Shown piece after piece: positions 3,307-31,938 of a stretch of DNA of 64,000 nt. Every line of letters starts with the position of its first letter. Position 1 is the first letter of the stretch. A model generated the notes under the pieces. It was given only the letters and a program-made list of their open reading frames with translations, did not search any database and was not told the DNA's origin. The stretch is from Octopus sinensis. Lineage: Eukaryota. Position numbers and translations under genes: made by a program. The DNA is taken from positions 24,614,001 through 24,678,000 of the forward strand of contig NC_043017.1 in assembly GCF_006345805.1 (NCBI RefSeq), written 5' to 3'.

Positions 3307-3454
3307 AGTAATAGTGTATTTGCAAACACCAAGGGTATTCCAAAGTTTGATGGATTTATCACGGGAGCCGGATACAATCTGACGATTGTCACTTGAAAAT
3401 GAAACACTCAAGACATCTCTATTATGGCCAACAAAGCTTCGTGTCATCATGGAT
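3307..3454 (-). CDS. RACK1: RACK1 coding exon 3
   Basis: TTTTATCCAG acceptor, 148 nt, GTGAGT donor; [24 protein letters not shown]. Confidence 0.97.
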
Positions 3455-7004: not shown

Positions 7005-7109
7005 ATGGTTGACAGCCAGTGCACAGTTAAAGAATTAGATCTATGGATTAAACAGTTATATGAATGTAACCGACTCTCTGAGACTCAAGTGAAAACATTA
7101 TGCGAAAAA
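7005..7109 (+). CDS. PPP2C-like: PP2A-C copy 1 exon 1
   Basis: [35 protein letters not shown], followed by GTAAAT donor. Confidence 0.93.
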
Positions 7110-7408
7110 GTAAATAACTTTTTAAACTTTCGTGCGCACAATAACAATAATAATTTAGTTGTTTGTTGTTCTCCATCATCATACATAAAGGATACATAAA
7201 GCTAAAAAATCTCTAACAAAAAATAATCTTTGAAAAAAATTAATCGAAGTTGGAGACTCGCGATGTAATTTTTTTTTTTTTTTGGCATTTTTCGATAAAG
7301 GTAAAGGAATTATGAAAGTGTTCGGCAATTTCCGTAAAACATTTTTATTTCTTTAATTTATTTTCGGCCGAATCACTTATATTTATGTATTTTTGGTGCA
7401 TGTATATT

Positions 7409-7439
<31 letters not shown>

Positions 7440-10400
7440 TTGAAAATAGAAAAAGAATGATCACAGTTTAATTAATTTTTTTTATTAATATAAATTTTAG
7501 TTCATAGGTCTTGTCTCCAGCGAGTGCTGTATATATACATACATGCACATACGTAAATATACATTCCATAAAGGAAAGACGGACAAATACATAAATATAC
7601 ACACACAAAAATATATATAAACATAGTATTTACACAGGTGGAGGTAAAGAATACGCACACCACTCGTTTTGGGCGTAACAAAATTCCTAACCCTAATCCT
7701 GAACACCGGGTGTGCATATTCTTTACCTTCGCCTTTACACAAATATACATTCACAAAAAAATACATAAACTGAAGAAAAAAAACTTTCTTACGGAAATTG
7801 CCGAATTAACACTTTCATTTTTCCTCTAGCTTTTATCGAAAGAATACCTTTTTCGCTTTTAAATGGAAATATATATTTAAAAAAAAACAAAAAACAGTTT
7901 AACCTACACAAGTGGTCCACTCCATTCCGAACTTTATTTCCTCATAACTTTCAGAAAAATCGATATCTCAGATTATGTGGATTATGATTATATCGGAATT
8001 TAATGCAGGAAAAAAATAATTGGTGTGCGCTCACACGCACATATTGACACATCACTTCAAAATTTCAAGTTTCATTTTGTATGTAAATATATGTATATGT
8101 GTGCGCCCACCAACTTTTTTTTCATGATCGTAATCTACAGCACTTGAAAGGTATTTGTAGAAAATTTCATTTAAAAATATCCATTTTTCTGAAAGTTATG
8201 AGGAAACAAAGTCGAAAGAGCACACTCGTGCAGGTATGTCAAAATATAGTTGATTGAAATACTGAAACGAAATCCAAAATATTGTTTATAAATTTTATTT
8301 TGTGGACATTTTATTTATTTACTTATGCACTTTTTTGAAAATATCTGATGACACTTAAAAAACGTTACATCTGATGATTTTATAAACGTCATTTCTAATC
8401 AAACCTAAGTCGTCTAAATGCTTTTTCTTGTAATATATCATTTTAAAAGGAAAGTATTGCTGACTCATACGTCTTAAAAAATTAAGAATAAAATTTTTAA
8501 TTGAATACTTATAAATTACGTAAACGTTTCTATTTCCTCATTTATATTCATAATTTTAAAATGAAAGCATTCTTATCTCATTTTATCAGTGTTTTTATAC
8601 GTTCCCATTTTTGAGGAATTTACGCCGCGATTCTCCACATTTACCTTACCAACTTCTTATGAGGATTTAAAATATAAGGATATATATACATAAATTATAC
8701 AATATATAAATTAGCGCAGACGAGGTTAGTAGTCAAGGTTGCTTTGGAATCGGGTGGTTCTTGGTTCAAGATCACTGTGTAGTACGTTGACCAAGTGCCC
8801 TCTACTATTGTTTCAGATAAGTACCCAATCAGCAGAATTTGGTAAATAGGAACTGTTTAGAACATCTCCATCCTATATATACATAGTCAAAATCAGCTTT
8901 AATAATTGATGGATAACTTTCAGACTTCTGTGCTTTTGCATTAACTAACATCGGTTTTCACTTATAATATGCTTATTTGTTCAAATTTATCTCTAATCCC
9001 TAAATCAACTAAACAAAAGATACTTCAAAGAAATCAAACTAATAATTTCGTTTTTGGTTACTTTTTTCTTTATTTTTAACTAAATTAAATTTTTTATTAC
9101 ATATATAACATGTATGTATATGATACATATATAATACAAAAGAAAGACAAAGGGGGGAAAAAGAAAAAAAGGGTGAAAGAAATGGAAGAAAAAAGCATTG
9201 ATGCAGCATCAGGTGATTCAATTGGTTACACACCACAAGGTTCAATGGAACCTACTGAAGCAAGTATGCTCACTGCATTACTATGATCCAGTGGTTTTCA
9301 ACCATGGTTCCGCCAGTACAGTCCAGGGGTTCCACAAGAAGTTACAAAACTGCTAAAATCAGCAGTAATTTTTAATTCTCCTGTGCAGATATGTGTGCTT
9401 AAGACTATTAAATTATTGCACAGGGGTTCCCCGAGCCAGTGGAATGTTTCCTTGGGGTTCCTCGAGCCAGTGGAATGTTTCCTTGGGGTTCCGCTCCAGC
9501 AAAAAGTTTGAAAAGCACTGCTATGATCAAGGCATTGGAAAAGCCAAGCACCCTCTTGGGCATCACCTAACATTTTGGTGAGGTGAGCTGCCAATGATGA
9601 CAAGAATTTTGCCACTAGTGTCCCTCCAAATGCCACAGATTGAATGAGATAGTTCACTGTCAGATCCCGATATGTCAGGTTTTTCTTCTGTTCAGCTATG
9701 GAAGAAGAGACCCTCCCATTTACGACAGCATCCAGGATGTGTGAGAGAGCAAACGAGTCAAAGACTGTGGCGTCCCAGATGAGGCACCTACCTCTTACCC
9801 AGGGACAGAGAGTAAGCCATCACTTCTGGATAATCCCAGCTCCAGAACTGAGGAGATATTAATTCGAGCCAAGGCCTGCTTAATGATTAAGTTTAGCTCA
9901 GTGTGATGAGCAAAGCGACCAGCATTTAGGCAGCAAAACAGATTGTGAAGACCTGTGGTGTCGAGGGTCCTACCTCAGCGACATCTCAGTCCCCTGCAGA
10001 CGTCAACTCCCACTCTGAGTGTGATGGTAAGGCAGAGCTCATCAAGACTGAATAAACCTCTAATGTTGGCCACAGGCAGGGCATCAATTCAGTCCTCCAA
10101 GAATTTTGCACTAGCAGAAAGTAGGTGACACCTTGAAAATGGATCAGATTGATCAAGGAGAGAGTTGAAAGTGGTACCTGAATGCAGATTGTCTCATATT
10201 CTCTGCTTCCGTCTCTCCTCAGCACTTGGTACTGCATTGATGTTTTTTTTTCTTACTCTTCTTTCTTTTTTGCTTTTTTTTCTAAATGGTTTTTGTTTAT
10301 TTTATTTTTGAAATGACATATTAGGTTATACTGGGATATATTTTTGCTTTATATATTGTATAATTACATATAAGGGTGCATAAAGCAATGGTAAGAAATT

Positions 10401-10575
10401 AGTTGGATGTTTGTATTTTGTAATGTTACCATGGCGTTAGGCTGAACAATGCCTTGTGAGGGAAATTAGTGGATGGAAACTGCAGAAACCTGATGTATGC
10501 ACATACATATGTTTGTGTGTTTATATATATGTATATATATATATATATCTATGTATATATGTATATGTATGTATG

Positions 10576-10615
<40 letters not shown>

Positions 10616-12051
10616 TTATCGTTCTTTAACGTCTGCCTTCCATGGTAGCATGGATTAGATGGTTTCAAAAGAGCCGGCCAGGCTGAAACCCGCACCAGAC
10701 TTCTGTGACAGTTTTGGCAGGATTTTTACAGCTGGATGCCCATCCTAACACCAGCCTCTATATATAGGCTCAGACATTGCTGTGTGGTCGGGAGCTTGCT
10801 TCCCAACCACATGGTTCTGGGTTCAGTCCCACTGTGTGATACCTTGAGCGAGTATCTTCTCCTATAGCTTCAGGCCAAGTAAAGCCTTGTGAGTGGATTT
10901 GGCAGATAGAAACTGAAAGAAGCCCACCATATATATATTTGTATCTGTGTCTCTCCCAATCACCACTTAACAACTGATGTTGGTACGTTTACATCCCTGT
11001 AACTTAACAGTTCAGCAAGAGAGATCAATATATGTTCCAGTACTTGAAAAAAATAAGTTATGGAGTCAATTCATTTGACTAAAATTCTTCAAGGCAGTGG
11101 GGCCACAAACTAATGACTGAAACAAGCGAAAGATAAAAGATATATCATCATCATTGTTTAACGTCTGCTTTCCATGCTGGCATAGGTTTGACGGTTTGAC
11201 TGAGGACTGATGGCTGCACCAGGCTCCAATCTGATCTGGCAGAACTTCTACAGCTGGATGCCCTTCCTAACGCCAACCACTCTGAGAATGTAGTGGTGCT
11301 TTTACGTGCCACTGGCACAAGGGCCAGTCAGGCAGTACTGGTGACAGCCACACTCAAATGGTGTTTTTTATGTGCCACCTGCACAGGAGCCAGTCTAGCG
11401 GCACTGGCAACGACCTTGCTCGAATGTTGTTTTTCACATGTCACCGGCACAAGTGCCAGTAAGGTGACGCTAGTAACGATCACACTTGAATGGTACTTTT
11501 TATGTGCCACCGGCACGGGAGCCAGCAGCCCTGGCAACGATCACACGCAGATAGTGCTTTTAACATTACACTGGTTGGGTGCCAGTCATGCGATGCTGTC
11601 ATCGGCCACATCAGTGAATTTGATTTTGCTTGTGATTTCACTTGCCTCAACAGGTCTTTGCAAGCAAAGTTTAGTGTCCAGCGAAAGAAAGGTACATATA
11701 AGTAGGCTGGTTACACCACTGGCATAGGCCACAGATTATGGTCTCACTTGGCTTGTCAGGTCTTCTCAAGTACAGCATATTTCCAAAAGTCTTGGTCACA
11801 AGTCATTGCTTTGGTGAGGCCCAATGTTTGAAGGTCATATATATCTTATATATATTAAATGTACAGAAAACAAAAAACAACGACAGGTAAGGTAACAAGT
11901 TGATGTACTAGCTTGATGCTCAGGAAGAATGGAAAAGTCTTTGATATTTTGAGCCTATGCTCTTCAACAGAAAGGGATGAGTGGAAAAAATGGAGAGAGA
12001 CAGGTAAAAAATGTGTTGGGATTAACAGTTTAACATATTGAAATGTGTATG

Positions 12052-12083
<32 letters not shown>

Positions 12084-14270
12084 ATATATATTATATATAT
12101 GTATGTATGTATATATAAGTTGTTTGAAGTGGCACAAGTGGTTGGCCTCATAGGATGTTTATCCATGATACCTTTAGAAAGTGAACTCTTTCCCACATCT
12201 CAGGTTTGTATAGAGATGATGGCTTGGTAGTGTCACAAAACATGATCACCCTTATCATTTTTCTCTAGACATAACATTAGACAGGTAAGTACCACCCTTA
12301 TGAGAAGCCAGTGAAGAGACTGTACACATCTATCAGAATGCAATAATCCTCAACTAAATTAGAAACAGACACAAGAAGGTGTGGAAAATTAATGACGAGG
12401 CAGCACTCTACCGTAATGAAGTCTTAACAAACAATGGCTTCAGTGAGAATTTAGTCTTTATGAAGAAACCTCCATTCGTCTTGCATCTGAGGAAAACCAA
12501 GACGTGGAAAGTAATTTGATTTAATCTACCTATAGTTTTAAAGATACTAGGGATTTTCTATCTCTTGTACTGCACCACAAAAACACTACATCCATACATA
12601 CAGGCTTTTCCTTTACAGGTGCCAGTGCCATATAAAATGCACTTGTGCCAGAGCTGCGTAAATGCACCTAAGCCAGTGGCACATAAGATGCACCCAGCAC
12701 ACTCTGTAAATGGTTGGTGTTAGAAAAGGCATGCAGCCATGGAAATCATGTCGCAACAGACAACTGGAGTCTGGCCAGCTCCTATCAAACCATCCAACCC
12801 ATGCCAGCATGGAAAACAGATATTAAATTATGATGACGCTGAGTTTAGCTATTTTTGCCTAGCTAACATCAATTCCAGCATTCATCCCCACTCAGCAACT
12901 TATTTGGAACTTCTTAAATTTAGCCACTCAACTGCTGAGGGGATACTTTCCTTTCCATGGCCATGGTATACCAGACTACACTCCCTCTTCTAGATAGTAC
13001 TAACAAAAAAATAAATGGGGCTCGGTATGTCATATGCAACACACACAGTTTTTTAGGTCCAAGGTCAGTGAGAATTCTACTTTCCAGTTTCATTTAGAAG
13101 CTTAGAGATCAGTGCTCTGGCTTCTCCACTACAAACTGATACTTGTACTTGCAGCAGTGTTCACCTGGGCTGGGTTGAGCCAGTTCCAACCAATGAGTCA
13201 TGTTCAGAGTTTCAGTAGGAGTACAAATTCACATGTGGTCCCTGATTCGCATGCATACACTCTTTAGGATAATATGATCTGTAGCAGCTCTCACCATCAT
13301 TTGTTGACCATTGCAGCTCTTCCTGCTATCACTTGTCAACCTTGATAGAGAATTCACTGACCAAGTCACCACTGACTATCAGAGCAGACGTAGCCTAGGT
13401 TTCTATAAACTGATAGGCCCCTGCCTCTATACTCCAGGGAACTTCGTAATTGCTGGCTCTGCCTACCTGAGAAAACTTATGCCCTGATAGCAGTACTTCT
13501 CATGAAAAAAATCTAAAGCAATCTCAAATTGTCATCACTAATCAGTTTTTGTCTTAATCAAGTGCCAACTAATTGATTCAGAAAATAAGGCAACAAAAAA
13601 AATCAAGGAGTTAATTTCTTTACTAATGAAGGTTAATCTTAGTTGAGTTGCTTCCCATAGACTATCAGTATTGCCTTCACAACGTAATACAATTTAGCAA
13701 CAATTTTCGTCATGTCATCTGAGTCTTTGAATATGAAACAAGATCTCTGCAAGTCTTCGTTGCTTAGTCTCTCATTTATTAACCCGTTTATGATGGGAAT
13801 CAGAGATATCCACTCAAAATTTCATTCACTGTGGAAAGCAGTTTATATGTACTAATCTATTTTTGTTGAGGAATGTCATGTTTAAAGCTATTATACTATG
13901 GAGATAGGACAAGTTTATTGGGGCAACATGACTTACAGAAAATACCATATTGGAATAAGCATGAACATTTATTTCTCAGTGAAAGAGCTAAATACACCTG
14001 GTCTATCACAAAAATGAACTGGACAGTTTTGAAACAATGGATATTGCTTTACTTATTTTTCTATATATCACACTTGTCCCCTTCAAATATTTCCATCCAC
14101 TGTTGAAGCACGGGAATAAGAAGTTTGCTTCCCCAACAACATAGTTTTGGGCTCAATTTCACTGCATTTTTCCTTAGGCAAGTGTCTTCTACTATAGCCC
14201 AGGCAAACCAAAGGAAGCTTTGAAATATACCCATCATATCTTTGTGTGTGTGTGTGTCTGTGTATGTATG

Positions 14271-14301
<31 letters not shown>

Positions 14302-14466
14302 CATCGTTGTCATCGTCATTGAACATTTGTCTTCCATGCTGACATGGGTTGGACGTTTTGACTGGAGTTGGCATGGTTTTTACACCTGGATGTCTTTCTA
14401 ATGCCAACCACTTTACAGAGTGTAGCGGGTGCTTTTTACATGGTACCAGCACTGGTGAGATCTGTC

Positions 14467-14502
<36 letters not shown>

Positions 14503-17500: not shown

Positions 17501-17728
17501 CACTTGACAGCCGATGCTGGTTTGTTTACATCCTCTGTCACTTAACAGGTTAGCAATAGAAACCGATAAAATAAGTACTAGGCTTACAAAAATAAGTCTG
17601 GGGGTTGATCCGTTCAACTAAAGGCGGTGCTCCAGCATGGCTGCAGTCAAATGACTGAAACAAGTAAAAGAAGAATATATGTATATATATGTGTGTGTAT
17701 ATATATATGCATATCATATCATATATAT

Positions 17729-17776
<48 letters not shown>

Positions 17777-17833
17777 ATAAATATATATGTATACATACAT
17801 ATACACATACATATATATATATATGCATACGTG

Positions 17834-17866
<33 letters not shown>

Positions 17867-20800
17867 GCATGTGTGTGTGTGTACTGTTTTTTTATACTTG
17901 TCTGTCACTATTTGACAAGTAATGTTTGTTTGTTTGTGTCCCTGTAACTTAGCTGTTTGGCAAAAAGACACTGACAGAATAAAGCACCAGAATTAAAGTA
18001 AATACTGTAATAGATTTGATTGTGACTGTATCCTTTACGGCAGCACCCCAGCATGGCCACAGTCAAAAGACTTAAACAAATAAAGAATAACAGAATATAT
18101 CCATTGTTCTTCCTGCTTTTTCTCTGCTTCTCTCTGCAACTACACCAGTCACTACTGTATTTTGCCTTTGTTTTGATTCAATCCTACGCATATTTATATA
18201 GTATTCAGCTCATAAAAAACATCCACTCCACTCTGTAAAGTGGTTGACATTTGGAGGACATCCAGCTGTAAAAACCATGCCAAAACAGACAGTGAAGCCA
18301 GGTTCTGTCTTCTGCCTAGCCAGCTCTTGTCAAACTGGCCAGGCGACAGCGACAATTCTAACTGCAAGCTCATCTCTACTTGACACAGTGTGAATGACTC
18401 GAAAATATCCTCAAACTTCAAGTGCTTCCTTTCATGTGCCCACTTCATGTTTGTTTTTTTTTCTCTACCAACTCAACCAAACTAACAACCAGGATGCTTC
18501 TCATCACATTTGAGAACAAGTTATAAGATCCAGGCATTGTTTTGTTATTTCCACAGAAAAACAACACTATTTCACAGAATTTCTTTATAGCTTCTGGCTA
18601 TTCTTGGCAGCCTTTAAGAAAAAGGTCTTGACATTTGTTTGCTTGTCCTCTTGCATATCTTTCTTTTATCATTTATCTTCCACTTGTTTCAGTCTTTAGA
18701 CTGTGGCCATGCTGGGGCACTACCTTGAGAGGCTTACTTAAACAAATTGGCCCCAGAACTTATTACTCTTTGTAAAGTTTGGTACTTATTTTACTGTTCT
18801 CCTTGCAGAACCTCTCTATTACAGGGACGTAAACAAACCAACACTGGTTGTCAAGTGGTAGTAGGGGACAATCACAAGCACAAAAAACTACACACACACA
18901 CACACACATGCATGTTTCTGTTTGCCAGATCCACTCGCAAGGCTTTTGTCAGACCAGGGCTATAGTAGACTGCACCTGCCCATGGTGTCATGCATTGAGA
19001 CTGAACCCAAAACCATGTGATTGGGAAGCAAACATCTTAACCACACAGCCATATCTGTGTGTATGTGTATATATATGTGTGTGTATATATATATAATGCA
19101 AAATGGGACAAAAATGCAAAACATCTGGACAGTTAGGTGATAAAAAATGGGACAATAAAACGTCCAGATAGATGATACAAAGAAAACAAAGACAGGTCAT
19201 TCGAAGTTTTCTTTCCAGTTGAAATTGCAAAGATAATCTGGTACTTGACTGAGGAAAGAAAACTTCGAATGACCCATCCTTGTTGCCTTTGTATCATCTA
19301 TCTGGATGTTTGATTTATTTTGTTGTCCCATTTTTGTATCACCTAACTGTCCAGATGTTCTTGTCCCATTTTGTATTTTATATTCTTTTATTTGTTTCAG
19401 TCATTTGACTGTGGCCATGCTGGAGCACCGCCTTTAGTCGAGCAAATCGACCCCAGGACTTATTCTTTGTAAGCCTAGTACTTATTCTATCGGTCTTTTT
19501 TGCCGAACCACTAAGTTATGGGGACGTAAACACACCAGCATCGGTTGTCAAGCGATGTTGGGGGGGACAAACACAGACACACAAACATATACACAGACAT
19601 ACATATATATATATATACATATATACGACAGGCTTCTTTCAATTTCCGTCTACCAAATCCACTCACAAGGCTTTGGTCGGCCCGAGGCTATAGTAGAAGA
19701 CACTTGCCCAAAGTGCCACGCAGTGGGACTGAACCCGGAACCATGTGGTTCGTAAGCAAGTTACTTACCACACAGCCTCTCCTATATATATATAGCAGCA
19801 TACATACACTTTGGTATCTTATATATATATATATGATGATCACACACACACACACACACACACAGATAGATAGATAAAGATACCCCCCACACACACATTT
19901 GGTGGAGGGTGCTCAGAAAGCATAGTAATCAGAATATAAAACCCATGTGGAAAATTTGAGTTTCTTCAACATGAAGAATCTTTCTTTGAGTGAATAGTAA
20001 ATTGTATGTTGCTTTGCACATGTGTGGTGTGCAATGCTACATGGTAATGAGACATAGGGTGTAAATATAGAGACTGTGAAGGTTGGAGGTAGAAGAAGAC
20101 AGCGTACTTCCTTGAACATGTAATGTTTATATGCATCAGTGGTGTGATATGAATGAGCTGAGAGATCAACTGGGTATAAGAGGAATCAGTTATTTATAGT
20201 GTGTAAGAAAGGCAATTGCATTGGTAAATGGGAAAGACCCCGTTCAGTCATGAATGTCATGAGAGTGCACCTAGTAAGGTCCCTTCTGATGTACAAGTCC
20301 AAGCAAGGTTGTTTGTGGAAGATGAGCATTCACCCATGCATACCAGCCTCCCCTCTCAACAACACTGATGTTGTCCAAGGGAAAGGCAAAGGCCAATACA
20401 GCTTGGCACCAGTGACATTGCAACTCATTTCTTCAGCTGGGTGAACTGGAGCATTGTGAAATGAGGTATATTATTCAAGAATACAACACACAGCCAAGTT
20501 CAGGAATTGAACTCACAATCTTGCAATTGTAAGCCCAACACTCTAACCACTAAGCCATGCACCTTCACCAATTTCATTGGTATGGATGTGTAATATATGT
20601 AAGAATGATAACAGATGGGTGAAGGAGTGTTGGGATATCCAAATGAAAAGAAGCTGTGCAAGAGGAAGGACCACGGAAGATGTAGGCTGAATTGGAAACG
20701 GTAATCTCAGAATGTTGAATCTTAAAAAAGGAGAAAAAGATGCAAGAAATGGTGAGATGCTGTGTTGGAAAAGAACCATCCAACCCATGCTAGCATGAGA

Positions 20801-22025
20801 AAACAGATGTAAGAAAATGATGATGTGTATATATAGATATGACGGATTCTTCCGTCAAAGATGACATATGGGCATTCAACTTTTTGCTGCTTGTTTCTCT
20901 GAAGACTGTCAGAATGATGTGGACACCTCTGATGAGAAGCCAATAAGATTTGAAAATCAGTTAAGGTTTATTATTTTTTTCAGTCTGCAGAGAAAAGGCT
21001 AAAATTAGCCCTGTTTATAATTATGCCATATGTTATATATATAGGGATCTAATGCGCTTGGCTTAGATTTCCCTTGGTGTCTGCCCAGGTCGGAGCAATC
21101 TCAAGATTAATCAGCCGAAATTGCGAAGATGATCCGGTTCTTGACTGATAACTGAGGGCTTTGAATGTCCCGTCCTGTGGTTCTTGTGTCGTCTTCTAGG
21201 TGTTTCACGTTCTTGTCCCAGTTTGTATATATTTTTTACTTTTTACATATATATATATATATATATATATGCAATCACATGTATGTATATATGAATGAAT
21301 AAATTATTTGCCATGTTGTTACTTGTTTAATAAATATTGTTTATTTAGTATTGTTTGTTACAGTTGTCTTCATATTTTTAGTTTTTATTGATGCTATAGT
21401 TTAGGTAATCCGAAGCCACCTCGGTAACTTTGTCGACTGTTTATTTATTAATTTGTTCTTTTTTACTTATCTCTCTTTTGTAGGCTCAAGAAATTTTATC
21501 CCAAGAATCTAACGTGCAGCAAGTAAAATGCCCAGTGACAGTATGTGGGGACATTCACGGCCAGTTCCATGATTTGATGGAACTTTTCAGCATTGGCGGT
21601 CGAATCCCAGACACGAATTACCTTTTCATGGGAGATTATGTTGACAGAGGATACTATTCAGTTGAAACCATAACACTGCTTGTTGCTTTAAAGGTACGTC
21701 TTTATAGGTGCAGGCGTGACTGGGTGGTAAGAAGTTTGCTTCCCAACCACATAGTTCCAGGTTCAGTTCCACTGTGTGGTGCCTCAGGTAAGTGTCTTCT
21801 ACGGTAGTTTCATGCCAACCAAAGCCTTGTGAGTGGATTTGGTAAATGGAAACTGAAAGAAGCCCAGGAGTGGCTGTGTGGTAAGTAGCTTGTTTACCAA
21901 CCACATGGTTCTGGGTTCAGTCCCACTGCGTGGCACCTTGGGCAAGTGTCTTCTACTATAGCCTCGGGCCGACCAAAGCCTTGTGAGTGGATTTGGTAGA
22001 CAGAAACTGAAAGAAGCCCGTCGTA

Positions 22026-22064
<39 letters not shown>

Positions 22065-25000
22065 TTGTCTCCCTAGCATTGCTTGACAACCGATGCTGGT
22101 GTGTTTATGTCCCCATCACTTAGCGGTTCGGCAAAAGAGACCGATAGAATAAGTACTGGGCTTACAAAGAATAAGTCCCGGGGTCGATTTGCTCGACTAA
22201 AGGCGGTGCTCCAGCATGGCCGCAGTCAAATGACTGAAACAAGTAAAAGAGAGTATATGTGTGTCTGTGTTTGTCACTCACCACCACTTGACAACCAGTG
22301 CTGGTGTGTTTATGTCCCCATAACTTAGTGGTTCGGCAAAAGAGACCAATTAAATAAGTACCAGCCTTTTAAAAAAATTAATACTGGGGTCGATTTGATT
22401 GACTAAAAACTCTTCAAGTAAAAGATAAAAGATACGGAACAACTAAGTGCAGATAGGAAGGAAAGCCATGCAGCTTCAAGAATCAGTTTACATAAGCGCT
22501 TTAGGGCGTGCTACTCTTCCTCCCGATCTTGTCACACAAAAAAAAAATGCAATCATGAATGTATGAGGGGGTGCTGAAAAGTTCCTGACTTTAAGGGTAT
22601 TGCAAAAGACCTGGTTGGTGGCCCAATCTTCTGATTTCTTTTACAAGGTTTAGAAAAACTGAAGAACTGCTGCAATAAGTGTGTGAATCTGAGAGAGAAA
22701 TATATAAATATATTCAATAAAGTCATAATTAACTGATCCTCCTGTATTTTCTTTTACCCAAAGATAGGAATTTTTCAACACCCTCTTGTGTATACATGCA
22801 TACATACATGTGCTTGAGGTGACCTATTGAGTCAAGAACATCAACAGCAGCCGTTCAAGAATTTGGACCTGGAGATCTCCATTTCCAGCGACTTCGAGGG
22901 CCACCTCCCAGTGGTGTCGGGCGTCAACGAAGAACCCTCGACTACAACAAGACAACCAAAGTTTTTTTTTCCCAAGGTCTGGGGTCTCCCACCCCTAAGC
23001 CCTAGGCCATCATTTAATCACCCTTACCCGTCTTGTTGCTTAACAACAACAACAACATCAATATCAAAATCAAATCAAATGGAAATTGTGGTTGTGAACC
23101 CCGTGCCAGTAGTACATAAAAAGCACCATCAGCACATGGCCGATACCAGTGCCGCTTTGACTGGCTTCCATGATAAAAAGCACCATCTGATCATAGTCGA
23201 TGCCAGCTCCTCTGGCTCCTGTACTGGTGGCACGTAAAAAGCATCCACTACACTCTTGGAGTGGTTGGCGTTAGGAAGGGTATCCAGCTGTAGAAACACT
23301 GCTAGATCAGATTGGGGCCTGGTGCAGCCTCCTACCTTCCCAGACCTCAGTCAAACCGTCCAACCCATGCCAGCATGGAAAATGGACATTAAACGATGAT
23401 GATGATATGCACATGCACATACATACACTTATGAGGGGGTGCTGAAAGGTTCCTGGTGTTAAAGGTATCGTGAAAGGCCTGTTGGAGGCCTGACCTTTCA
23501 AGTGCTTTTACAGGGCTTAGAAAAAGTGAATAGTGAATCCGAGAAAGAAATATATTGAATAAAATCATAATTAGCTGAGCTTCCTGTATTTTTTTTTTTA
23601 CTCAAAGCCAGGAACTTTTTAGCACCCATTCGTGTGTGCTTGTGTCTCCTTGAATTGACAAGTTTCAACATCAGACTATCTATCTATCTATCCGCTCAGT
23701 CGAAGTCGACTTTCGGTTACTCGATGGATCAGTGTCCTCCACTCAGTTCTATCCTGGGCCGCTTCTTTCAGACTGGCTATGTCCATTCCAGTATCACTCT
23801 TGATGGTGTCAAGCCAGCGGGTTCTTGGTTGGCCTCTTCCTCTCTTGCCACTGACCATTCCGAGCATGATGTCCTTCTCCAGGGATTTTCTCCGCATAAT
23901 ATGACCAAAATATGCCAATCTATGCTTGGTGATCCAAGCTTCCAGCGACAGTTTCAGCTTGATCTGGTTAAGAACTTCTCCATTGGTGAGCCTCGCTGTC
24001 CATGGAATCCGTAAAAGTCTTCTCCAACACCAAAGCTCGAATGCATTAATCCTCTTCAACATCAGACAATCAGTTGAATTCATTTCCAGTATTCTGCAAA
24101 GAAAAAAAAATTGTGCTTGTTAAAGCCATATCTGTATATTAATAGAAATGTTGTTAAACAAGACCACAAACTACTATGAGAATGGAGAATGATATTGTCA
24201 GGTTGTAGCTTTATTGTGAGAGCATCTAATTCAGATGTAACAAAATTGTTCTGCGAAATATTTCATATTTCTTTATGTCTCCTTTTTAATGTTTCTTTTT
24301 TTGTCTCTTTTTTGATATGTTTCTTTTTTGACACTTGTGAACAATTTTGCTGTAAATCAAATTTTCAGTGTTTTTGTTCCCAAATACTCCGGTTTTGCCA
24401 CTTAAAACTGTAAAAACCATGCCTGTTTATTCATAAAAATGTTGTTAAACTTTTTTCTCTTCCAACAGGTCAGATATAAAGACAGAATAACTATACTTCG
24501 AGGAAATCATGAAAGTAGACAGATTACCCAAGTTTATGGATTTTATGATGAATGTTTGAGGAAGTATGGGAATGCTAATGTTTGGAAATTTTTCACAGAT
24601 CTCTTTGATTTTCTTCCTCTAACAGCATTAGTAGACGAAGAAGTAAGTTTGATTTCTTCTTGCTGCTTTGCAGATTGCTTTTGTACTGCTTAGAGATTTG
24701 TTAAACCTAATTTTTTTTCATCATCATCTGGTTGTGCTTATTCTACAGATTGCCATGGTGTGTTCTTCCCAGTCATGTCATTGCATGTTGTAGGTCTTCT
24801 CGGGTGCACTCAGAGTCCTTGCATAGTTGCTTACCTATGCGGCAGGTATTTAAAGGGAGAAATTTGATAAGACAGTCAGTCACCGGCTGACACTCGCTGA
24901 CGATACATCGAAGAGGCCAGGGAACAGAAGAAAGAAGACATGCACCCAACACCAGAGCTGAAGACACCTCCGAAAGGGGGGAGGGCCCGCCACGTCAAAA

Positions 25001-28000
25001 TGGTAGAGGAGTAGGGGCCGAAACCCGATGTGGTTCCTCCTGATGATGTCTTGAGCTAACTGGATCCTATAAAGGAGCTGTTGTGGTAGCAGACCACGAA
25101 ACACGGTTGTAATTCCTGTGGTCTACTGATATTTGCATGCCCATGCTTGAGTTCTCAGAGTAGAACACTGCTGATGACCTCATCCTTTGCTTTCCAACAA
25201 AACTTAGTGATGATGCAGTCACGTTACATACTGTTTAGTTAAAAGGAAATGTTATTTTTACAATATTTTATTAGTTAAACTTTAATATTTAGCACTCATG
25301 TTCTTGTTTCAGTCTTTAGACTGTGGCCATGCTGGGGCACCACCTTGAAAAATTTTCAGTCGAATGAATTGACCCTAGTACTTATTTTTGTTAAGCTTGT
25401 TACTTATTCTGTCAGTCATTTTTGTCAAACTGCTAGGTTACAGTGACGTAAACACACCAACACCAGTTGTCCAGCAGTGGTGGGGGACAAATAAAACATG
25501 AAGACATGCATACACACACAAACACATACATGTTTCCATCTACCAAATCCACTCACAAGGCTTTGTTCAGCCCGAGGTTATAGTAGAAGCTACTTGTTCA
25601 AGGTGCCACACAGTGGGACTGAACCCAGAACCGTGTGGCTGGGAAGCAAGCTTCTTACCACACAGCCTCGCCTTCACCTAGTTAATAAAGAATCGTTTTA
25701 CTTTTTCTTTATTGGCCAAAGAACAAGATCCAAGATCTGCTTTATGGGGGGGAAAATACAGAATAAAATATTTTCTCAAAAATACGAAAATATACCACTA
25801 GTGATGCATATGGCAGCTGTGTGAAGTTTACAATGAACCACCAGTGGTACCTGTTGCAGTTGATGGGATCTATTCAGTTTGACCGGCATTTTTTTCTAGT
25901 GGTGTCATATGAAATTGTCACCCATAATTATGACCCTAGTATCGATCTATGGCATTTCAATCTGTTTTAGGTTTAGGGGTGGAGGGAAGGGTATCTTTTT
26001 TTCTTCAGAAATGTAAATAAACCCAATCTGTTTCTTAAACGAGGGACATATTCATACGGCACAGAATGTTTTCACTTCAATAGACGTCACTGATTGGTTG
26101 AAATTGCAGAAATTGAAGAAAGAACACAACAAATATCTTACAAACTATAGAATTTTCTCAATAAAGCCAAGAGAAAAAGATGTTTTATTAACACATTCTA
26201 CCAGTATACGAAGTTTAAAATTGTTTAGTTACATGGAAATTATTTTAAAAAACTGTCAGTCAAAGTGAAAAGATCCAGTTGCTGTTATAATCTTGTGTAC
26301 ATTCTTCTAAGACTTGCAGTATTTCTTTATTATCTTTGAACACTTGTAAACTTTCTGAGTCTTTCTCTCTTGTTTTTTTCTTTACAGATATTTTGTTTAC
26401 ACGGTGGATTATCCCCTTCAATTTACAACTTGGACAACATAAATACCTTGTTCAGAAAACAGGAAATACCACATGAAGTATGTGTAAATTTATATTGGTT
26501 TCAAATTTTGGCACTGGCTAGCAGTTTCGGGGGGGGGGGGTAGGTAAGTCAGTTACATTGACCTCAGTATTCAATTGGTACTTATTTTATTGGCCCTTAA
26601 AGGATAAAAAGCAAAGTCAACTTTGGCAGAATTTGAACTCAGAACTTAAAGGCAAGCAAAATACCACTAAGAATTTTACCTGGCTTCCTAACGATTCTGC
26701 CACTTCACAGCATTTATTATCATCATCATCATCATTTGATGTTTGCTTTCCATGCTGGTATAGGTCAACAGGAGTTGGCCTGGCAGAAGACGGCATCAGA
26801 TGTCTGTGTCTATTTTGACATGGTTTTTACAGCTGGATGCCCTTCCTAACACCAACCATCCCACAGAGTGGACTGAGTGGTTTTTACATGAAACCAGCAC
26901 AGGCGAGGTCAGATCCTTTCTTCCATAAGCACAAGGGCTGAAATTTTGTGGGAAGGGTCCAGTCAATTACATCAATCCTAGTACTCAATTGGTACTTATT
27001 TTATCAATCCCAAAAGGATGAAAGGCAAAGTTGATCTGGGCAGAATTTGAATTCAGAATGTAAATACAGACAGAATACTGCTAAGCATTTTGCCTGGTGT
27101 GCTAATGCTTCTGCCAGCTCACTTCCTTTATGTATCTCTCTTTATATAAATGGCAGTTTGTCTGCGTGTTTCTGTGTGTCTGTTTGCTTGTACCCTCACC
27201 CTGAAACTTGACACACACATAGCCCAATGTCATAATTCAAAACTAACGCAGCGAAAATTTTGAAAAGTTCACCCAGTTCTGAAAAAAATCGATAAATTCG
27301 ACATGGGGTCGAGAATCAGAAACACAAACCGCAAACTGTCTAGGGGACGCAACTCCACCTTTTTTTACTCAAAAAAAATTTACCATCATTTTTTCCCATT
27401 TTTTTGCTATTTTGTGGCTATAACTCTCTAAAAATGCTTTATAGTTATTTCCCTTACAAACCTGAGCAACGCCGGGCGATACTGCTAGTAACATATATTG
27501 CTACTTGTTTTCAGTCATCATCATTATCACATCCACTTTCTCATGCCTGCATGGGTTAGATAGAATCTATTGAGGTAGAATTCCTACAGTCAGATGCTCT
27601 TCTTGGCTCGAAACCAGGTGATATTTCTTGATAGCCAGATATGTTTCATATGGAAGACTGGTGATGGTGGTGGTGGTGGTGGTGGTGGTGGTGGCAGTGG
27701 CAGAAAAACAAAGATACAAACACACACATGTACACACACTGACATATGTGATGGGCTTCCTTTTCAGTTTCCATCTACCAAATCCACTCACATAGCTTGC
27801 TTGGCCCATGACTATATTAGAAGAAGGTACCATGCTGTGGGATTGAACTTGAAACTACATGTTTGGGAAGCAAGTGTCTTAATCACATTGCTACATCTGC
27901 ACATTTTTTTCTTCTTTTTTTCTACAACTCACTGTGGGATACAATGAACCATACACCCATCAATCTAGAAATTCTGGAAAGGAAACGGGACTGGAGTGGT

Positions 28001-30801
28001 TAAACTCTGAAGCATAGGTTCTCAACCAGAGTCAATGTAACCCTTAGGGGTCCACATAAGATTTTGTGGATAAAATTCATATGCAATAAATTGGTTACAC
28101 TTCTACAATAAACAAAATATCTCAACAGTTTTTATTTATACAATTCTTAATATCTAATTATAAAAATATAAAATATATTCTTTTTTTTTTACGTGGAATG
28201 GCTGGGAAGGCCCATGTGAGTAAAATAGGGATCAAAGGGGTTCATAGATAAAAACTGGTTGAGAACCACTGCTTTAACCCTTTAGCATTTAAACCGGCTA
28301 TATCCGGCCAAAAGTATTCTGCCTGTTTTATGTTCAAACTGGCCAGATCTGGTCTCTCACACCAACCCTACATATATCGTTTTAAAAATTAACAGCTACC
28401 TCATTAAAATCTCATAACTACAAGATAATGTATGATTAGTTCAAAACAATTAGGATAAAAAAGCATTAATTTTGGCAGAATAATGCAAACACTAAAGGGT
28501 TAAAGAGACCTTCAAGTAGAATTGCAAAACAACGGTTAGACTGGCAACCTGAAGGAAAGAGAGAAGTTGGATAATCTAAGAAAACCTGGAAAGGATGCAT
28601 GGAGCATGAAACGAAAACGGTTTCTCTCTCTTGGTCTGAAATCAAGGAGGGAATCCAAGATTGCATCCACTGGCATGAAATGGTCATAGCTCTTTGCTCC
28701 TTACAGAGTAATGTGGACTAACTAACTATAATGCACTGTAAACATGAAGCTAAATATACAGAAATTCTTTTTCAGGGTCCAATGTGTGATCTTCTTTGGT
28801 CTGATCCCGGTACACACAACGGTTGGAGCCTGTCACCGCGAGGCCTTGGTTACACATTTGGCAAATGTATTTCAGAACTGTTCTGTTACTCAAATGGTCT
28901 TTCCCTTATATCTCGTGCTCACCAGTTGGCCATGGAGGTAATTATAATTTCCCTTGTTTCTATATAGTTTGCTCTTAATTCATGCAGAATCATCATCATC
29001 ATTTAGCATCCGCTTTCCATGCTAGCATGGGTTGACGGTTCGACTGGGGATCTGGGAAGCCAGAAGGCTGCACCAGGCCCAGTCTGATCTGGCAATGTTT
29101 CTACGGCTGGATGCCCTTCCTAACGCCAACCACTCCGTAAGTGTAGTGGTGCTTTTTACGTGCCACCTGCACAGGGACCACAGGAGGCTGGCAAACAGCC
29201 ACGATCAGTTGGTGCTTCTTACGTGCCACCGGCACAGAAGCCAGTCAAGGCGGCGCTAGCATCGGCCACATTCGGATGGTGCTTTTTACGTGCCACCGGC
29301 ACAGAAGCCAGTCAAGGCAGCGCTGGCATCGGCCACGTTCGGATGGTGCTTTTTACATGCCACCGGTACAGAAGCCAGTCAAGGCGGCGCTGGCATCGGC
29401 CATGTTCGGATGGTGCTTTTTACGTGCCAATCTGAAACCTTTCGAACTTTTGCGAGGATTTTGATATTTTTAAAGGGCCATTTTTTTGTCTTAGTTATTT
29501 CAGTCATTAGATTGCAGCCTTGCTGGGGCACCTCCTTGGAGAATTCTTTAGTCGAATGAATCGACCCCAATACTTATTTTTTTAAAACCTGCAACTTAGT
29601 CTATCATTCGCTTTTGCTGAGCTGCCAAGTTATGGAGACGTAAAAACACACTAGCACCTGTTGTCGAGCAATAGTGGGGTACAAACACAGACACCCAAGG
29701 CTTCTTTCAGTTTCCATCTACCAAATCCAACTCTCAAGGCTTTGGTCAGCCTGAGGCTATAGTAGAAGACACTTGCACAAAGTGCCATGCAATAGGACTG
29801 AACCTGGAACCATATGGTTGGGAAGCCAGCTTGTGCCTTTTTTTTATTTAAATTTTGATTAATGTCAATCATTTAATTTCTGTAATTGATTTACAAGATT
29901 CTTGAGTTGAACTTGGGTGTTGAAACAGATTTTGTCATATTTTGGGAGGATCATTATGCCAATAATAAACACATGCACTGGTTGTATTTCACCTCTTTAT
30001 TATTTATTTGTCAATAAACTATTTAATTTTTCTTTAATGAAACATCAGTTGATAACGTCCACCATTTAAGGGTTGATCAATTATTCTCTCTTTCTCTCAC
30101 ACACACACACAAACATAATTGTTAAAATAAATAGGAAAAAAATTACAAAAGCAGTTTATTCTCTTCCACAGGGTTACAATATGTGTCATGACAACAATGT
30201 AGTGACAGTGTTTAGTGCTCCAAATTATTGCTACCGATGTGGTAACCAAGCAGCCATCATGCAAATTGAAAGTGGCTCTAAATATTTCTTGTAAGTGAAT
30301 ATTATTATTATTATTATATTTTTTCCTTCTTTCTTCAAATTTTCTTCCGTTTCTCGCCGAGTGTTTTCTATACACCTAGGGCAGAGAAGGGCATTATTGT
30401 ATGCATTCCCAGATTTCACGTGCAAATTCACAGATAAAATATGTATTTAAAAATTAATAAATAAATAAATTCATGGATGGATGTTATTTTCACAGCGATA
30501 GTGCTCTTCTTAGTACATGAGCCATTCCAGTTAACACGATTTTTTGCACTTCCTGTAGGAATGGTAAGCCTGGAATCATTTTCAAATAGGTTTCAGTACC
30601 TTTTTTTATCATTCCTAGAGATCCTACGATCACTGGTACTGTAGTCGCCTTGAGATGCCACATTTTTTCAATTTCTATTAGCAGGTCTTTATATTTACTA
30701 ATCTTGTCAAATTCTTTCGCCGCTATATTGTGATCACAGGGAATACTAATGGCAATTAATAAACACATCCTTTTTGTCTGATCTTTTATAATAATATCCA
30801 G

Positions 30802-30874
<73 letters not shown>

Positions 30875-31632
30875 CTTTGTAAGACAGTGTAGGTAAAAAT
30901 GTACCAGAGTTGTTAGTCATCTGTCAAGTCACAACAAGGACCTCAGACAGATAATACTTTCCTTAAGATGTGCGCTGCGCCCAATAAGGGCTGCTGTTTG
31001 CAAGACATCAATCTTGCATGGGATTTCCAGTTGCCCTAAGAAGTCTTGAAGTTTCAATGGGACTGAGCCCAATGCTCCAATCGCCAATTATCTTTTACTT
31101 GTTTCAGTCATTAGACTGTGGCCATTCTGGGGCAGTCTCTTGAAGAATTTTAGTCAAATGAATTGATCCTGGTACTTTTTTTAAAGCTTGGTACTTATTT
31201 TATCACTCTCTTTTGCCAAACTGCTAAGTTATGGGGACATAAACAGCCCAACACCAGTTATCAAGTGGTGGTGGCAGGGGAGACACATAGATACACACAT
31301 ACACACACACACACACATGCATGACAGGCTTCTTTCAGTTTCCATCCACCAAATCCACTCACAAGGCTTTGGTCTTCCTAAGACTCTAGTAGAAAACATT
31401 TAACCAACATGCCACACAGTGTGATTGAACCCAGAACCATATGGCTGGGAAGGAAGCATCTTGCCACACAACCACCTACATTTGTTTGTGTGTTTGTTTG
31501 TTTGTTTTTGTTAATTAGAAATACTGAAACAAAATCTGTTTATTCCATTTATTTTTCAGCTTACAATTTGATCCGGCTCCCGTGAAAAGAAAACCAAATT
31601 CAGATCACCCAGTTCCAGATTATTTTCTTTAA
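7005..31632 (+). CDS. PPP2C-like: Serine/threonine-protein phosphatase 2A catalytic subunit, divergent tandem paralog (copy 1), complete, 310 aa
   Basis: join(7005..7109, 21484..21693, 24469..24642, 26388..26477, 28776..28937, 30172..30290, 31560..31632) = 933 nt, open frame, all GT-AG. Exon sizes 105/210/174/90/162/119/73 match PPP2CA structure. Motifs [38 protein letters not shown] and C-terminal DYFL* are present. Confidence 0.96.
9226..10240 (-). mobile_element. CRE/R2-superfamily (RLE endonuclease) non-LTR retrotransposon C-terminal remnant, interrupted by a hAT MITE
   Basis: Frameshifted peptides [60 protein letters not shown]...NA.SILAS. Confidence 0.7.
9289..9520. mobile_element. hAT-type MITE with 8-bp TSD
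   Basis: TIRs CAGTGGTTTTCAA...TTGAAAAGCACTG; perfect TSD CTATGATC at 9281-9288 and 9521-9528; internal ~31-bp tandem duplication. Confidence 0.85.
12390..12560 (+). mobile_element. Penelope-like element RT/linker remnant
   Basis: [22 protein letters not shown]...[13 protein letters not shown] resembles the Penelope N..A..Y..AL..SG..E.....R.RKIIWFNPPY region. Confidence 0.45.
13000..13830 (-). mobile_element. RTE-type LINE endonuclease remnant (highly decayed)
   Basis: Fragmentary peptides such as DSDDMTK and WSTNDG; many stops. Confidence 0.4.
14746..14813. repeat. Degenerate (CCCTAA)n-like tract
   Basis: TAACCCCAGCCCTAACTCTAACTTTAACCTTAACCCTAGACCCTAGCCCTATACCCTAACCCTAACCC. Confidence 0.7.
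19095..19377. repeat. Long imperfect inverted repeat (about 120-bp arms, 36-nt spacer)
   Basis: 19095-19216 is the reverse complement of 19253-19377, for example ACATCTGGACAGTTAGGTGATA / TATCACCTAACTGTCCAGATGT and GGTCATTCGAAGTTTTCTTTCC / GGAAAGAAAACTTCGAATGACC. Confidence 0.9.
19386..19782 (-). mobile_element. tRNA-derived octopus-type SINE (young copy)
   Basis: Reverse complement of the copies at 21866 and 35442; Pol III B-box-like GGTTCAGTCCC head. Confidence 0.85.
21484..21693 (+). CDS. PPP2C-like: PP2A-C copy 1 exon 2
   Basis: [70 protein letters not shown]; TAG acceptor, GTACGT donor. Confidence 0.97.
21866..22251 (+). mobile_element. tRNA-derived octopus-type SINE (young copy)
   Basis: GGAGTGGCTGTGTGGTAAG...GGTTCAGTCCC...GCACCTTGGGCAAGTGTC...AAACAAGTAAAAGAG. 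Dozens of older relatives occur throughout the window. Confidence 0.85.
23677..24054 (-). mobile_element. 5'-truncated RTE (BovB-like) LINE with 13-bp TSD
   Basis: Open frame [21 protein letters not shown]...[15 protein letters not shown]...[14 protein letters not shown]; (GATA)n tail; TSD TTCAACATCAGAC at 23664-23676 and 24055-24067. Confidence 0.9.
24469..24642 (+). CDS. PPP2C-like: PP2A-C copy 1 exon 3
   Basis: [58 protein letters not shown]; CAG acceptor, GTAAGT donor. Confidence 0.97.
25865..26278. mobile_element. MITE with imperfect TIRs
   Basis: GGATCTATTCAGTTTGACCGGCA ... TGTCAGTCAAAGTGAAAAGATCC. Confidence 0.6.
26388..26477 (+). CDS. PPP2C-like: PP2A-C copy 1 exon 4
   Basis: [30 protein letters not shown]; CAG acceptor, GTATGT donor. 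Confidence 0.95.
27135..27488 (+). mobile_element. Non-autonomous Helitron
   Basis: Inserted between A and T; 5' TC(TCTCTTTATATA); 3' hairpin CCTGAGCAACGCCGGG about 11 nt before the terminal CTAG. Confidence 0.8.
28278..28499. mobile_element. piggyBac-type MITE
   Basis: TTAA|CCCTTTAG...CTAAAGGG|TTAA. Relatives at about 1640-1838, 32650-32880, 58816-59012 and 63200-63430. Confidence 0.75.
28776..28937 (+). CDS. PPP2C-like: PP2A-C copy 1 exon 5
   Basis: [54 protein letters not shown]; CAG acceptor, GTAATT donor. Confidence 0.96.
28993..29430. repeat. Abundant (CAT)n-tailed interspersed repeat with three internal 67-bp tandem units (29211-29411)
   Basis: Unit GGTGCTTTTTACGTGCCACCGGCACAGAAGCCAGTCAAGG...TTCGGAT starts at 29211, 29278 and 29345. 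Same family at about 11145-11730, 16330-16535, 23100-23400, 45250-45425 and 62820-63008. Confidence 0.85.
30172..30290 (+). CDS. PPP2C-like: PP2A-C copy 1 exon 6
   Basis: [39 protein letters not shown] plus 2 nt; CAG acceptor, GTAAGT donor. Confidence 0.96.
30317..30802 (-). mobile_element. R4/Dong-like RLE retrotransposon 3' end between (TAA)n tracts
   Basis: [22 protein letters not shown]...[29 protein letters not shown]...HVLRRALSL* (decayed PD-D motif), then 3' UTR and a (TAA)n tail. Confidence 0.8.
30803..30873. repeat. (ATT)n microsatellite
   Basis: About 23 uninterrupted units. Confidence 0.95.
30875..31090 (-). mobile_element. Second, distinct R4/Dong-like RLE 3' end
   Basis: [32 protein letters not shown](+1 shift)[10 protein letters not shown]; its 3' UTR ends at the (AAT)n tract. 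Confidence 0.7.
31560..31632 (+). CDS. PPP2C-like: PP2A-C copy 1 exon 7
   Basis: (F)[26 protein letters not shown]; TTTTTCAG acceptor. Confidence 0.95.
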
Positions 31633-31715: not shown

Positions 31716-31938
31716 TACAAGGGGGTGGCTGAAAAGTTCTTGGCTTTAAGGGTGTCGTGAAAGGTGTGGTTGGAGGCCCAACCATCTGATTTCTTTTATA
31801 GGGCTTACAAAAACTGAAGGATCACCACGATAAGTGTGTGAATCTGAGAAGAGAATATGTTGAATAAAATCATAATTAACTGATCCTCCTGTATTTTTCT
31901 TTTACCCAAAGCCAGGAACTTTTCAGTACCCTCTTGTA
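31716..31938. mobile_element. Mariner-type MITE in the 3' UTR of PP2A-C copy 1
   Basis: TA-flanked TIRs TACAAGGGGGTGGCTGAAAAGTTC ... GAACTTTTCAGTACCCTCTTGTA. Relatives at about 22562-22790 and 23429-23630. Confidence 0.75.

Follow-up and report, generated by a model that had tools for sequence, protein, structure and literature searches.

The catalytic subunit of protein phosphatase 2A (PP2A-C) is among the slowest-evolving enzymes known. Vertebrates have two PP2A-C genes, PPP2CA and PPP2CB, which are ~97% identical, unlinked and derived from a vertebrate duplication. The related subunits PP4C and PP6C share a PP2A-like core and have retained the methylatable YFL end, and they work with other regulatory subunits, which provides a precedent for re-wiring. 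Extra, lineage-restricted PPP genes whose proteins have accelerated while keeping their active sites are found in the male germline of Drosophila and nematodes; these paralogs are PP1-type, many of them are intronless retrocopies, and their expression in testis has been shown. In this work, we analysed a 64,000-nt stretch of an Octopus sinensis chromosome (CM016879.1), hereafter the window, in which two PP2A-C genes lie in tandem. The match of the window to this chromosome record is 100% identical over 41,632 bases. The first, copy 1, is a diverged gene at positions 7005-31632 of the + strand, and the second, copy 2, is canonical.

Copy 1 resembles canonical PP2A-C (human PPP2CA and octopus copy 2) in its fold family, PPP motifs, catalytic and toxin-pocket residues, DYFL terminus and seven-exon structure. 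It departs from it by 64 substitutions relative to copy 2, by T301D and T304V (human numbering throughout), by a re-charged tail and by the absence of the ancestral promoter block, and since the duplication its protein has evolved at ~60 times the rate of the copy 2 protein. As in vertebrates, two PP2A-C genes are present in one genome, but the octopus pair is tandem, 79% identical and of cephalopod-lineage origin. The V58I substitution of copy 1 gives a GDIHG motif, which is also carried by a PP6-like sequence (P0033). In a comparison that covered PP6-like only, that sequence shares 157 identities with copy 1 and 159 with copy 2; copy 1 is not the closer of the two, and it clearly derives from PP2A-C, recently, rather than being a PP6-type subunit. 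Unlike the Drosophila and nematode paralogs, it is PP2A-type, retains all its introns and exchanges sequence with its parent gene. Our best explanation, to which we give as a whole a probability of roughly 0.6, is that copy 1 arose by tandem duplication, codes for a working protein and has been altered in its regulatory wiring. The historical part of this explanation (old duplication, burst of replacement, constraint, conversion) is largely shown, whereas neofunctionalisation is plausible and partly supported.

A tandem duplicate and its history

A tblastn search of the window with human PP2A-C alpha, a reference that agrees with the PDB chains of the human protein, retrieved two co-linear exon sets on the + strand (Table 1). 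The rebuilt coding sequence (CDS) of copy 1 is 933 nt long, with 310 codons and a stop in seven exons, and all six introns are GT-AG. The exon lengths (105/210/174/90/162/119/73) are those of full-length copy 2, whose ATG exon starts ~11 kb downstream and whose first four exons lie inside the window. The seven tblastn hits to the cuttlefish gene break at the same residues as the octopus exon boundaries. The sequence-only reading of the window had described an intact 310-residue frame with six canonical introns at PP2A positions, and both points were recovered. Copy 1 is a tandem duplicate of the local PP2A-C gene: the two are adjacent, in the same orientation, with the same exon lengths and phases, and have exchanged sequence.

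The copy 1 protein is already present in NCBI and UniProt, with the same sequence for O. sinensis (XP_029649068.1, XP_029649070.1) and O. vulgaris (CAI9738227.1), under the name 'PP2A catalytic subunit beta isoform' (RefSeq/ENA), which is a best-hit label. The copy 2 protein (310 aa; XP_029648988.1, CAI9738226.1) does not vary among O. sinensis, O. vulgaris and O. bimaculoides. Our literature searches by accession and keyword found no study of the copy 1 paralog. The suggestion that this might be an undescribed system has to be abandoned: copy 1 is an ordinary kind of lineage-specific duplicate, annotated before. We also rejected orthology with PPP2CB, as copy 1 is tandem to and exchanges sequence with the cephalopod gene and is absent at the cuttlefish locus. 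For annotators, this means that the octopus 'PPP2CB' label does not designate the vertebrate beta isoform.

The order RACK1-like gene (-), copy 1 (+, 696 bp apart) and copy 2 (+) is found in three assemblies, from three Octopus species. At the syntenic locus of Sepia pharaonis, a single PP2A-C gene stands head-to-head with the RACK1-like gene at a distance of 484 bp, and no second PP2A-C copy was found within 10 kb on either side. The head-to-head arrangement of RACK1 and PP2A-C is apparently older than the octopus-cuttlefish split, and the comparison indicates that the octopus pair arose within the cephalopod lineage. Searches with the full protein, its C-terminal 147 aa and exon 5 brought up nothing resembling copy 1, neither a protein nor a fragment, beyond the three annotated Octopus genomes, an absence that is weak evidence because the same searches recover no fragments from Octopus runs. 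In the available data copy 1 is restricted to Octopus, in line with the lineage specificity that had been proposed. The octopod-decapod split dates to ~275 million years (My) ago. Synonymous sites outside the conversion tracts described below are saturated, with proportions of differing sites (pS) of 0.75 between copies 1 and 2 and 0.80 between copy 1 and the cuttlefish type, so that the duplication can be dated only roughly; a three-point calculation on third positions places it at about three-quarters of the octopus-cuttlefish depth, with a wide error.

The two octopus proteins differ at 64/310 residues, and copy 1 is 76% identical to the human protein; at the nucleotide level, the copies differ at 210/933 coding positions. 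The counts made by hand in the sequence-only reading were reproduced, with 28/193 differences from copy 2 over exons 1-4, and 16/54, 10/40 and 10/23 differences from human in exons 5, 6 and 7. When a cuttlefish-type sequence serves as outgroup, 63 residues occur only in copy 1 and one only in copy 2 (chi-square 60, p=9e-15), which bears out the claim of asymmetric acceleration. The canonical octopus protein differs from that of Sepia pharaonis (cuttlefish-type) at 1/310 positions and from the human one at 24/309 aligned residues. Between copy 2 and the cuttlefish-type CDS, nonsynonymous divergence (dN) is 0.007 and synonymous divergence (dS) ~1.1, while dN between the two copies is 0.137 over the whole CDS and rises to 0.218 when exons 1 and 4-7 are taken alone.

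As for recent evolution, copy 1 of O. sinensis and O. bimaculoides differ by 5 nonsynonymous and 29 synonymous changes, and their dN/dS ratio (omega) is 0.041 (NG86), 0.063 (LWL85), 0.052 (YN00) or 0.048 (maximum likelihood). The dS between these orthologs is 0.28 in exons 2-3, where it is inflated because of the conversion tracts, 0.12 elsewhere and 0.066 in introns. When exons 2-3 are removed, 3 nonsynonymous and 10 synonymous differences remain, giving an omega of 0.075 (binomial p=2.7e-5 against neutrality). These values show that copy 1 is under strong purifying selection. In O. sinensis and O. vulgaris, the open reading frame (ORF) is uninterrupted and each of the 12 splice sites is preserved; in the O. 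bimaculoides ortholog, everything that has been sequenced of the exons and splice sites is intact. With an omega of 0.04-0.08 and an intact frame, the signs of pseudogenisation that were looked for, namely a dN/dS close to 1 and frame disruptions, were absent, and the gene is selectively maintained.

The lineage of O. bimaculoides separated from that of O. sinensis and O. vulgaris ~34 My ago (PMC10700109). If the dN of 0.218 in exons 1 and 4-7 had built up at a constant rate since a duplication no older than 275 My, ~18 nonsynonymous changes would be expected on the two 34-My branches, and 3 were seen (Poisson P ~2e-5, hand calculation); a duplication at 500 My would still predict 10 (P ~0.01). 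The observed number is below both expectations; copy 1 thus diverged in an early burst and came under constraint afterwards, and its fast evolution did not continue. Amino-acid replacement in copy 1 has since slowed at least 3-6-fold. The description of copy 1 as rapidly diverged thus holds in that the strong divergence is real, but the burst is old and the last ~34 My have been strongly constrained.

Parts of copy 1 have been homogenised with copy 2. Third positions differ between the paralogs at ~51% of codons in exons 1 and 4-7 (93/182-183). Two tracts, A and B (Table 1), depart from this, with 6/55 third-position differences in tract B (p=4.5e-8), while the stretch that separates them is normal (5/9). 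Over the final 140 nt of intron 2, the copies share 81% identity, against 50-56% for all other exon flanks, and the end of intron 2 is likewise similar between the copies of O. bimaculoides (78%). The same end is not conserved with cuttlefish (57-59%), and divergence of copy 2 from cuttlefish is normal in both tracts; the tracts therefore reflect homogenisation between paralogs rather than deep constraint. Two other explanations were rejected on the same grounds, a conserved intronic element upstream of exon 3, as that stretch is only 57-59% identical to cuttlefish, and synonymous constraint, as the ortholog comparison is normal there. Exon 3 is ~95% identical between the copies (165/174 nt), and short reads may cross-map when transcripts are quantified. 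In the scenario that we propose, an old tandem duplication was followed by a burst of replacements in exons 1 and 4-7 of copy 1, then by strong purifying selection for at least ~34 My, since the split between O. bimaculoides and O. sinensis/O. vulgaris, and codons 64-97 and 107-161 were later overwritten by conversion from the canonical copy. Copy 1 clearly exemplifies a mosaic paralog, in which exons that could diverge freely stand beside exons kept canonical by conversion.

Catalytic core, regulatory tail and promoter

A residue-by-residue comparison with the human enzyme confirmed the earlier observation that all metal and catalytic residues, as well as L309, are present in copy 1. The metal ligands D57, H59, D85, N117, H167 and H241, the phosphate and acid residues R89, H118 and R214, and Y265 are identical to those of human and copy 2; H191, C196 and Y307 are unchanged as well. 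Copy 1 has a Metallophos domain (Pfam PF00149, E=2.4e-42), and the GDIHG, GDYVDRG and GNHE motifs can be read in its translation. All 13 PDB sequence matches listed at a cut-off of E=1e-100 are PP2A-C alpha (E ~1e-171). A Foldseek search, made with a model of low predicted local distance difference test (pLDDT) score, gave PP2A-C at ranks 1-30, followed by PP1 and calcineurin at E ~1e-19. This AlphaFold2 model, built from a 33-sequence alignment, has a mean pLDDT of 62.6, with low confidence for residues 188-310. The canonical protein modelled with the same 33-sequence alignment is equally poor (61.4); the low score is thus an artefact of the shallow alignment and says nothing about the fold of copy 1. 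A scan with NCBIfam, whose models are prokaryotic, was uninformative. Taken by its sequence, copy 1 belongs to the PPP family and is PP2A-type, closest to PP2A-C and not to PP1, calcineurin or PP6-type enzymes. It is predicted to be a two-metal PPP Ser/Thr phosphatase, with its metal, phosphate and general-acid residues and toxin pocket intact.

The okadaic-acid/microcystin pocket, which we take from structures 2IE3 and 2IE4 to consist of Q122, I123, H191, W200, L243, Y265, C266, R268 and C269, is fully retained in copy 1. The idea of a toxin-resistant PP2A, linked to a diet of okadaic-acid-bearing bivalves, was rejected, as all pocket residues are unchanged.

We scored conservation in 55 diverse PP2A-C sequences and considered positions conserved in at least 95% of them as near-invariant. 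Eighteen of the 64 copy 1 differences fall at such positions, and 32 copy 1 states are absent from all 55 sequences. The near-invariant changes include D175Y, D184F, D204G, D205T, R206H, G210S, A216L, D223C, N229C and H230Y, as well as V244A, W250M, E277Q, R294V and E297K, and the near-invariant patches replaced in copy 1 span residues 175-186, 204-211, 216-230, 244-254, 277-285 and 294-303. Because 18 changes strike near-invariant positions, the divergence of copy 1, judged on this alignment, is not merely surface drift.

The C-terminus keeps PDYFL, including Y307 and L309, and copy 1 is predicted to be carboxy-methylated on its terminal Leu, as the DYFL end is retained. Upstream of it, T301 is replaced by Asp and T304 by Val. 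Mutants of the human enzyme (PMC9707111, Table 1) show that T301D removes B55-alpha binding or cuts it by half, that T304A increases the binding of B55-alpha and decreases that of B56-alpha, and that T304D, T304K and T304N abolish B55-alpha binding. With T301D and T304V, copy 1 is thus changed at positions that govern the choice of regulatory subunit. By analogy, the copy 1 tail would be fixed in states that bias holoenzyme choice in the human enzyme, and regulation through T304 would be lost.

The two genes also differ upstream. Copy 2 carries a block corresponding to the ancestral PP2A-C core promoter and 5' untranslated region (5'UTR), with a perfect cAMP response element (CRE)-like TGACGTCA at 42510 and GGCCATTTT at 42536. 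The 5'UTR of copy 2 maps to 42531-42745, with the promoter block at its start. In the 696 bp upstream of copy 1, neither TGACGTCA nor GGCCATTTT was found and the ancestral block is absent; conservation with cuttlefish is limited there to the 52 nt proximal to RACK1. As the block is common to Sepia and copy 2 only, it is copy 2 that continues the ancestral gene, by its promoter as well as by its sequence. Either the ancestral promoter was lost from copy 1, or copy 1 uses the RACK1-side region.

For O. vulgaris, the annotation lists a second, shorter copy 1 product (CAI9738228.1). Alternative forms were added to that annotation from transcript evidence by PASA (PMC10700109), and the existence of two copy 1 products is thus indirect support for transcription. 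A good splice-acceptor-like TTCTGTTTGTTTACAG (window 6980-7004) ends 25 nt 5' of the copy 1 ATG. Copy 1 may thus have an intron in its 5'UTR and a non-coding first exon further upstream, which would agree with the existence of two RefSeq accessions, XP_029649068.1 and XP_029649070.1, for the same protein.

Proposed altered wiring and competing explanations

The regulatory wiring of copy 1 may well differ from that of the canonical enzyme, with an acidic residue fixed at 301, a non-phosphorylatable Val at 304 and near-invariant patches replaced. Copy 1 would most likely work in a different, and probably narrower, set of holoenzymes and regulators. Its expression pattern is probably different too, because the ancestral core promoter block has been lost. 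It is tempting to go further and to regard copy 1 as a second PP2A-type subunit that octopods have kept for tens to hundreds of My, with a hard-wired tail, several replaced near-invariant surface patches, its own restricted set of holoenzymes and its own promoter, and as a young fourth member beside PP2A, PP4 and PP6, at an early stage at which its catalytic core still trades sequence with the parent gene. We hold this extended form as tentative, with the odds somewhat against it.

Several points weigh against our best explanation. T301D and T304V point in opposite ways for B55. The proposed change of partners is drawn from human single-substitution mutants rather than from the placement of the changes at interfaces, and our literature searches by residue name on the A, B and regulator interfaces gave nothing usable. 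D85, R89, N117 and H118 are encoded within the conversion tracts, and the untouched core is therefore partly the result of recent copying from the canonical gene; in other words, part of the apparent conservation of the core is homogenisation, not selection. The clustering of changes on surfaces and away from the core, as put forward in the sequence-only reading, would likewise be explained in part by conversion of exons 2-3. No assembled copy 1 transcript was found in Logan, a sparse collection, whereas copy 2 has some (L006, L007); for the suggested tissue restriction of copy 1, this absence and the lost promoter block are only indirect hints. Finally, the recent branches offer few changes to count (3-5 nonsynonymous ones).

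Alternatively, the two enzymes might have the same biochemistry and differ in expression. Copy 1 would then have the A, B and regulator partners of the canonical enzyme and be kept by a split of the ancestral expression domain or by dosage, and its substitutions would be tolerated or compensated leftovers of an early relaxed phase. Indeed, the copies do not differ in their catalytic machinery or DYFL end, conversion holds half of the core in a canonical state, and the proximal promoters of the two copies are unrelated, all of which this explanation accommodates. It accounts poorly for the 18 near-invariant replacements and the 32 states unseen in 55 homologs, for changes at tail positions that are experimentally sensitive, and for the fact that the changes were conserved once fixed. 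We consider it unlikely, though deserving of serious attention.

A catalytically impaired decoy or regulator, which would keep the PP2A-C fold, lack efficient catalysis or activation and sequester the scaffold or biogenesis factors, appears improbable. Impairment would come from changes in the loop switch (183-195) and in the 204-211 loop, and radical substitutions do adjoin active-site loops (D184F, L186K, D204G/D205T/R206H, A216L, D223C). Moreover, C196R and H191R, located in or beside the loop switch, lower the activity of the human enzyme (PMC9748336). However, copy 1 retains H191 and C196 together with all known metal and phosphate residues, and a decoy would not need selection on all of them.

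That copy 1 might be a decaying, young unprocessed pseudogene with its frame intact by chance is very improbable. No assembled transcripts of it were found, and the three O. bimaculoides models (XP_052831380.1, XP_014788030.1, UPI00069592AB) all go wrong after exon 5. However, the position of exon 6 in that genome is a 350-N assembly gap (L001 25459-25808, GCA_001194135.2) with alignable sequence on both sides; the gap removes exon 6 and accounts for the wrong C-terminal parts, so the pseudogene reading of these truncated models was rejected, and annotators should treat all three as erroneous. The omega values (p=2.7e-5 or lower), and a frame and splice sites intact over a time long enough to saturate synonymous sites, effectively refute this explanation. 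An assembly artefact (a haplotig, or a collapsed or expanded duplication), for which only the general frequency of such artefacts speaks, is refuted by the 210/933 coding differences between the copies and by the RACK1-copy 1-copy 2 order, which recurs in the assemblies of three species, each deposited separately.

Copy 1 represents a natural mutational experiment, in which 64 changes were tolerated and then held nearly unchanged, with 3-5 nonsynonymous changes separating species that split ~34 My ago. It would show which surfaces of PP2A-C can be re-wired without altering the chemistry, and it could help dissect how the tail selects B subunits.

Features of the window

Table 1. Location of genes, conversion tracts, regulatory regions and repeats in the window
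Feature	Position	Strand	Remarks
RACK1-like WD40 gene, exon 1	6195-6308	-	79% identical to human RACK1 residues 1-38
Head-to-head intergenic region, RACK1-like/copy 1	6309-7004		696 bp; CpG observed/expected 1.12, window 0.38
Copy 1 exon 1	7005-7109	+	ATG at 7005; codons 1-35; 12/35 aa differ from copy 2
Copy 1 exon 2	21484-21693	+	Codons 36-105; motifs GDIHG, GDYVDRG
Gene-conversion tract A	21568-21668	+	Exon 2 codons 64-97; third positions 6/34, Fisher p=3e-4
Gene-conversion tract B	24330-24635	+	Last ~140 nt of intron 2 and exon 3 codons 107-161
Copy 1 exon 3	24469-24642	+	Codons 106-163; GNHE motif, N117, H118
Copy 1 exon 4	26388-26477	+	Codons 164-193; H167, H191 retained; 8/30 aa differ
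Copy 1 exon 5	28776-28937	+	Codons 194-247; R214, H241 retained; 16/54 aa differ, including D204G, D205T, R206H, G210S, A216L, D223C, N229C, H230Y
Copy 1 exon 6	30172-30290	+	Codons 248-287, phase-2 end; toxin-pocket residues Y265-C269 retained; W250M
Copy 1 exon 7 and stop	31560-31632	+	Tail: R294V, E297K, T301D, R302H, R303P, T304V; Y307, L309 retained
First AATAAA/ATTAAA-type hexamer 3' of copy 1 stop	31863-31868	+	Candidate polyadenylation signal
Ancestral PP2A-C core promoter/5'UTR block	42473-42593	+	Copy 2; 71% over 125 nt to Sepia upstream, E=3e-11
Copy 2 exon 1	42746-42850	+	
Copy 2 exon 2	53497-53706	+	
Copy 2 segment matching tract B	55702-56004	+	Putative donor
Copy 2 exon 3	55838-56011	+	Putative donor of conversion tract B
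Copy 2 exon 4	62115-62204	+	Exons 5-7 past window end
Interspersed repeat family (examples, blastn high-scoring segment pair spans)	19378-19745, 25319-25635, 29546-29823, 31151-31440, 47065-47398, 50305-50680, 61861-62057		
Second repeat family	23212-23406, 45245-45414, 62815-63007		85-88% identical

The 5' part of the RACK1-like gene occupies positions 1-6308 of the - strand, with exons at 6308-6195, 4986-4816 and 3480-3310. Its annotated product is 317 aa long, and identity to human RACK1 is 67-79% across the three exons found. No tRNA gene was detected in the whole window, and the Rfam families all stayed below their gathering scores, introns of the RACK1-like gene included. Two ORFs, one of 247 aa (44009-44752, -) in intron 1 of copy 2 and one of 170 aa (32233-32745, -) between the copies, have no Pfam match and are probably chance or decayed transposon frames.

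RNA-editing-linked constraint has been reported for coleoids. Synonymous divergence of copy 2 between O. sinensis and O. bimaculoides is low, at 5/202 sites (2.5%) versus 5.8% in its own introns; this may reflect constraint on a housekeeping copy, linked to codon usage or to RNA editing. Divergence of copy 1 at four-fold sites between the same species is 12-19%, on small counts.

Between O. sinensis and O. vulgaris, whose split is reportedly only ~2.5 My old, intron 2 of copy 1 differs by a ~2.2-kb indel: it measures 4946 nt in O. vulgaris (L002 24671-29616) and 2775 nt in O. sinensis (21694-24468). Intron 4 is shorter by 346 nt in O. vulgaris. The introns of both copies and of their O. bimaculoides orthologs contain an interspersed repeat family of ~150-400 bp, 64-76% identical, which is probably SINE-like (short interspersed nuclear element), and a second family is listed in Table 1. 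Lastly, O. vulgaris CAI9738225.1 is a 410-aa isoform of copy 2 that departs after '...RRGEPH' and is without the last ten tail residues, DYFL among them. This form results either from misannotation or from an alternative 3' end that would give an unmethylatable enzyme.

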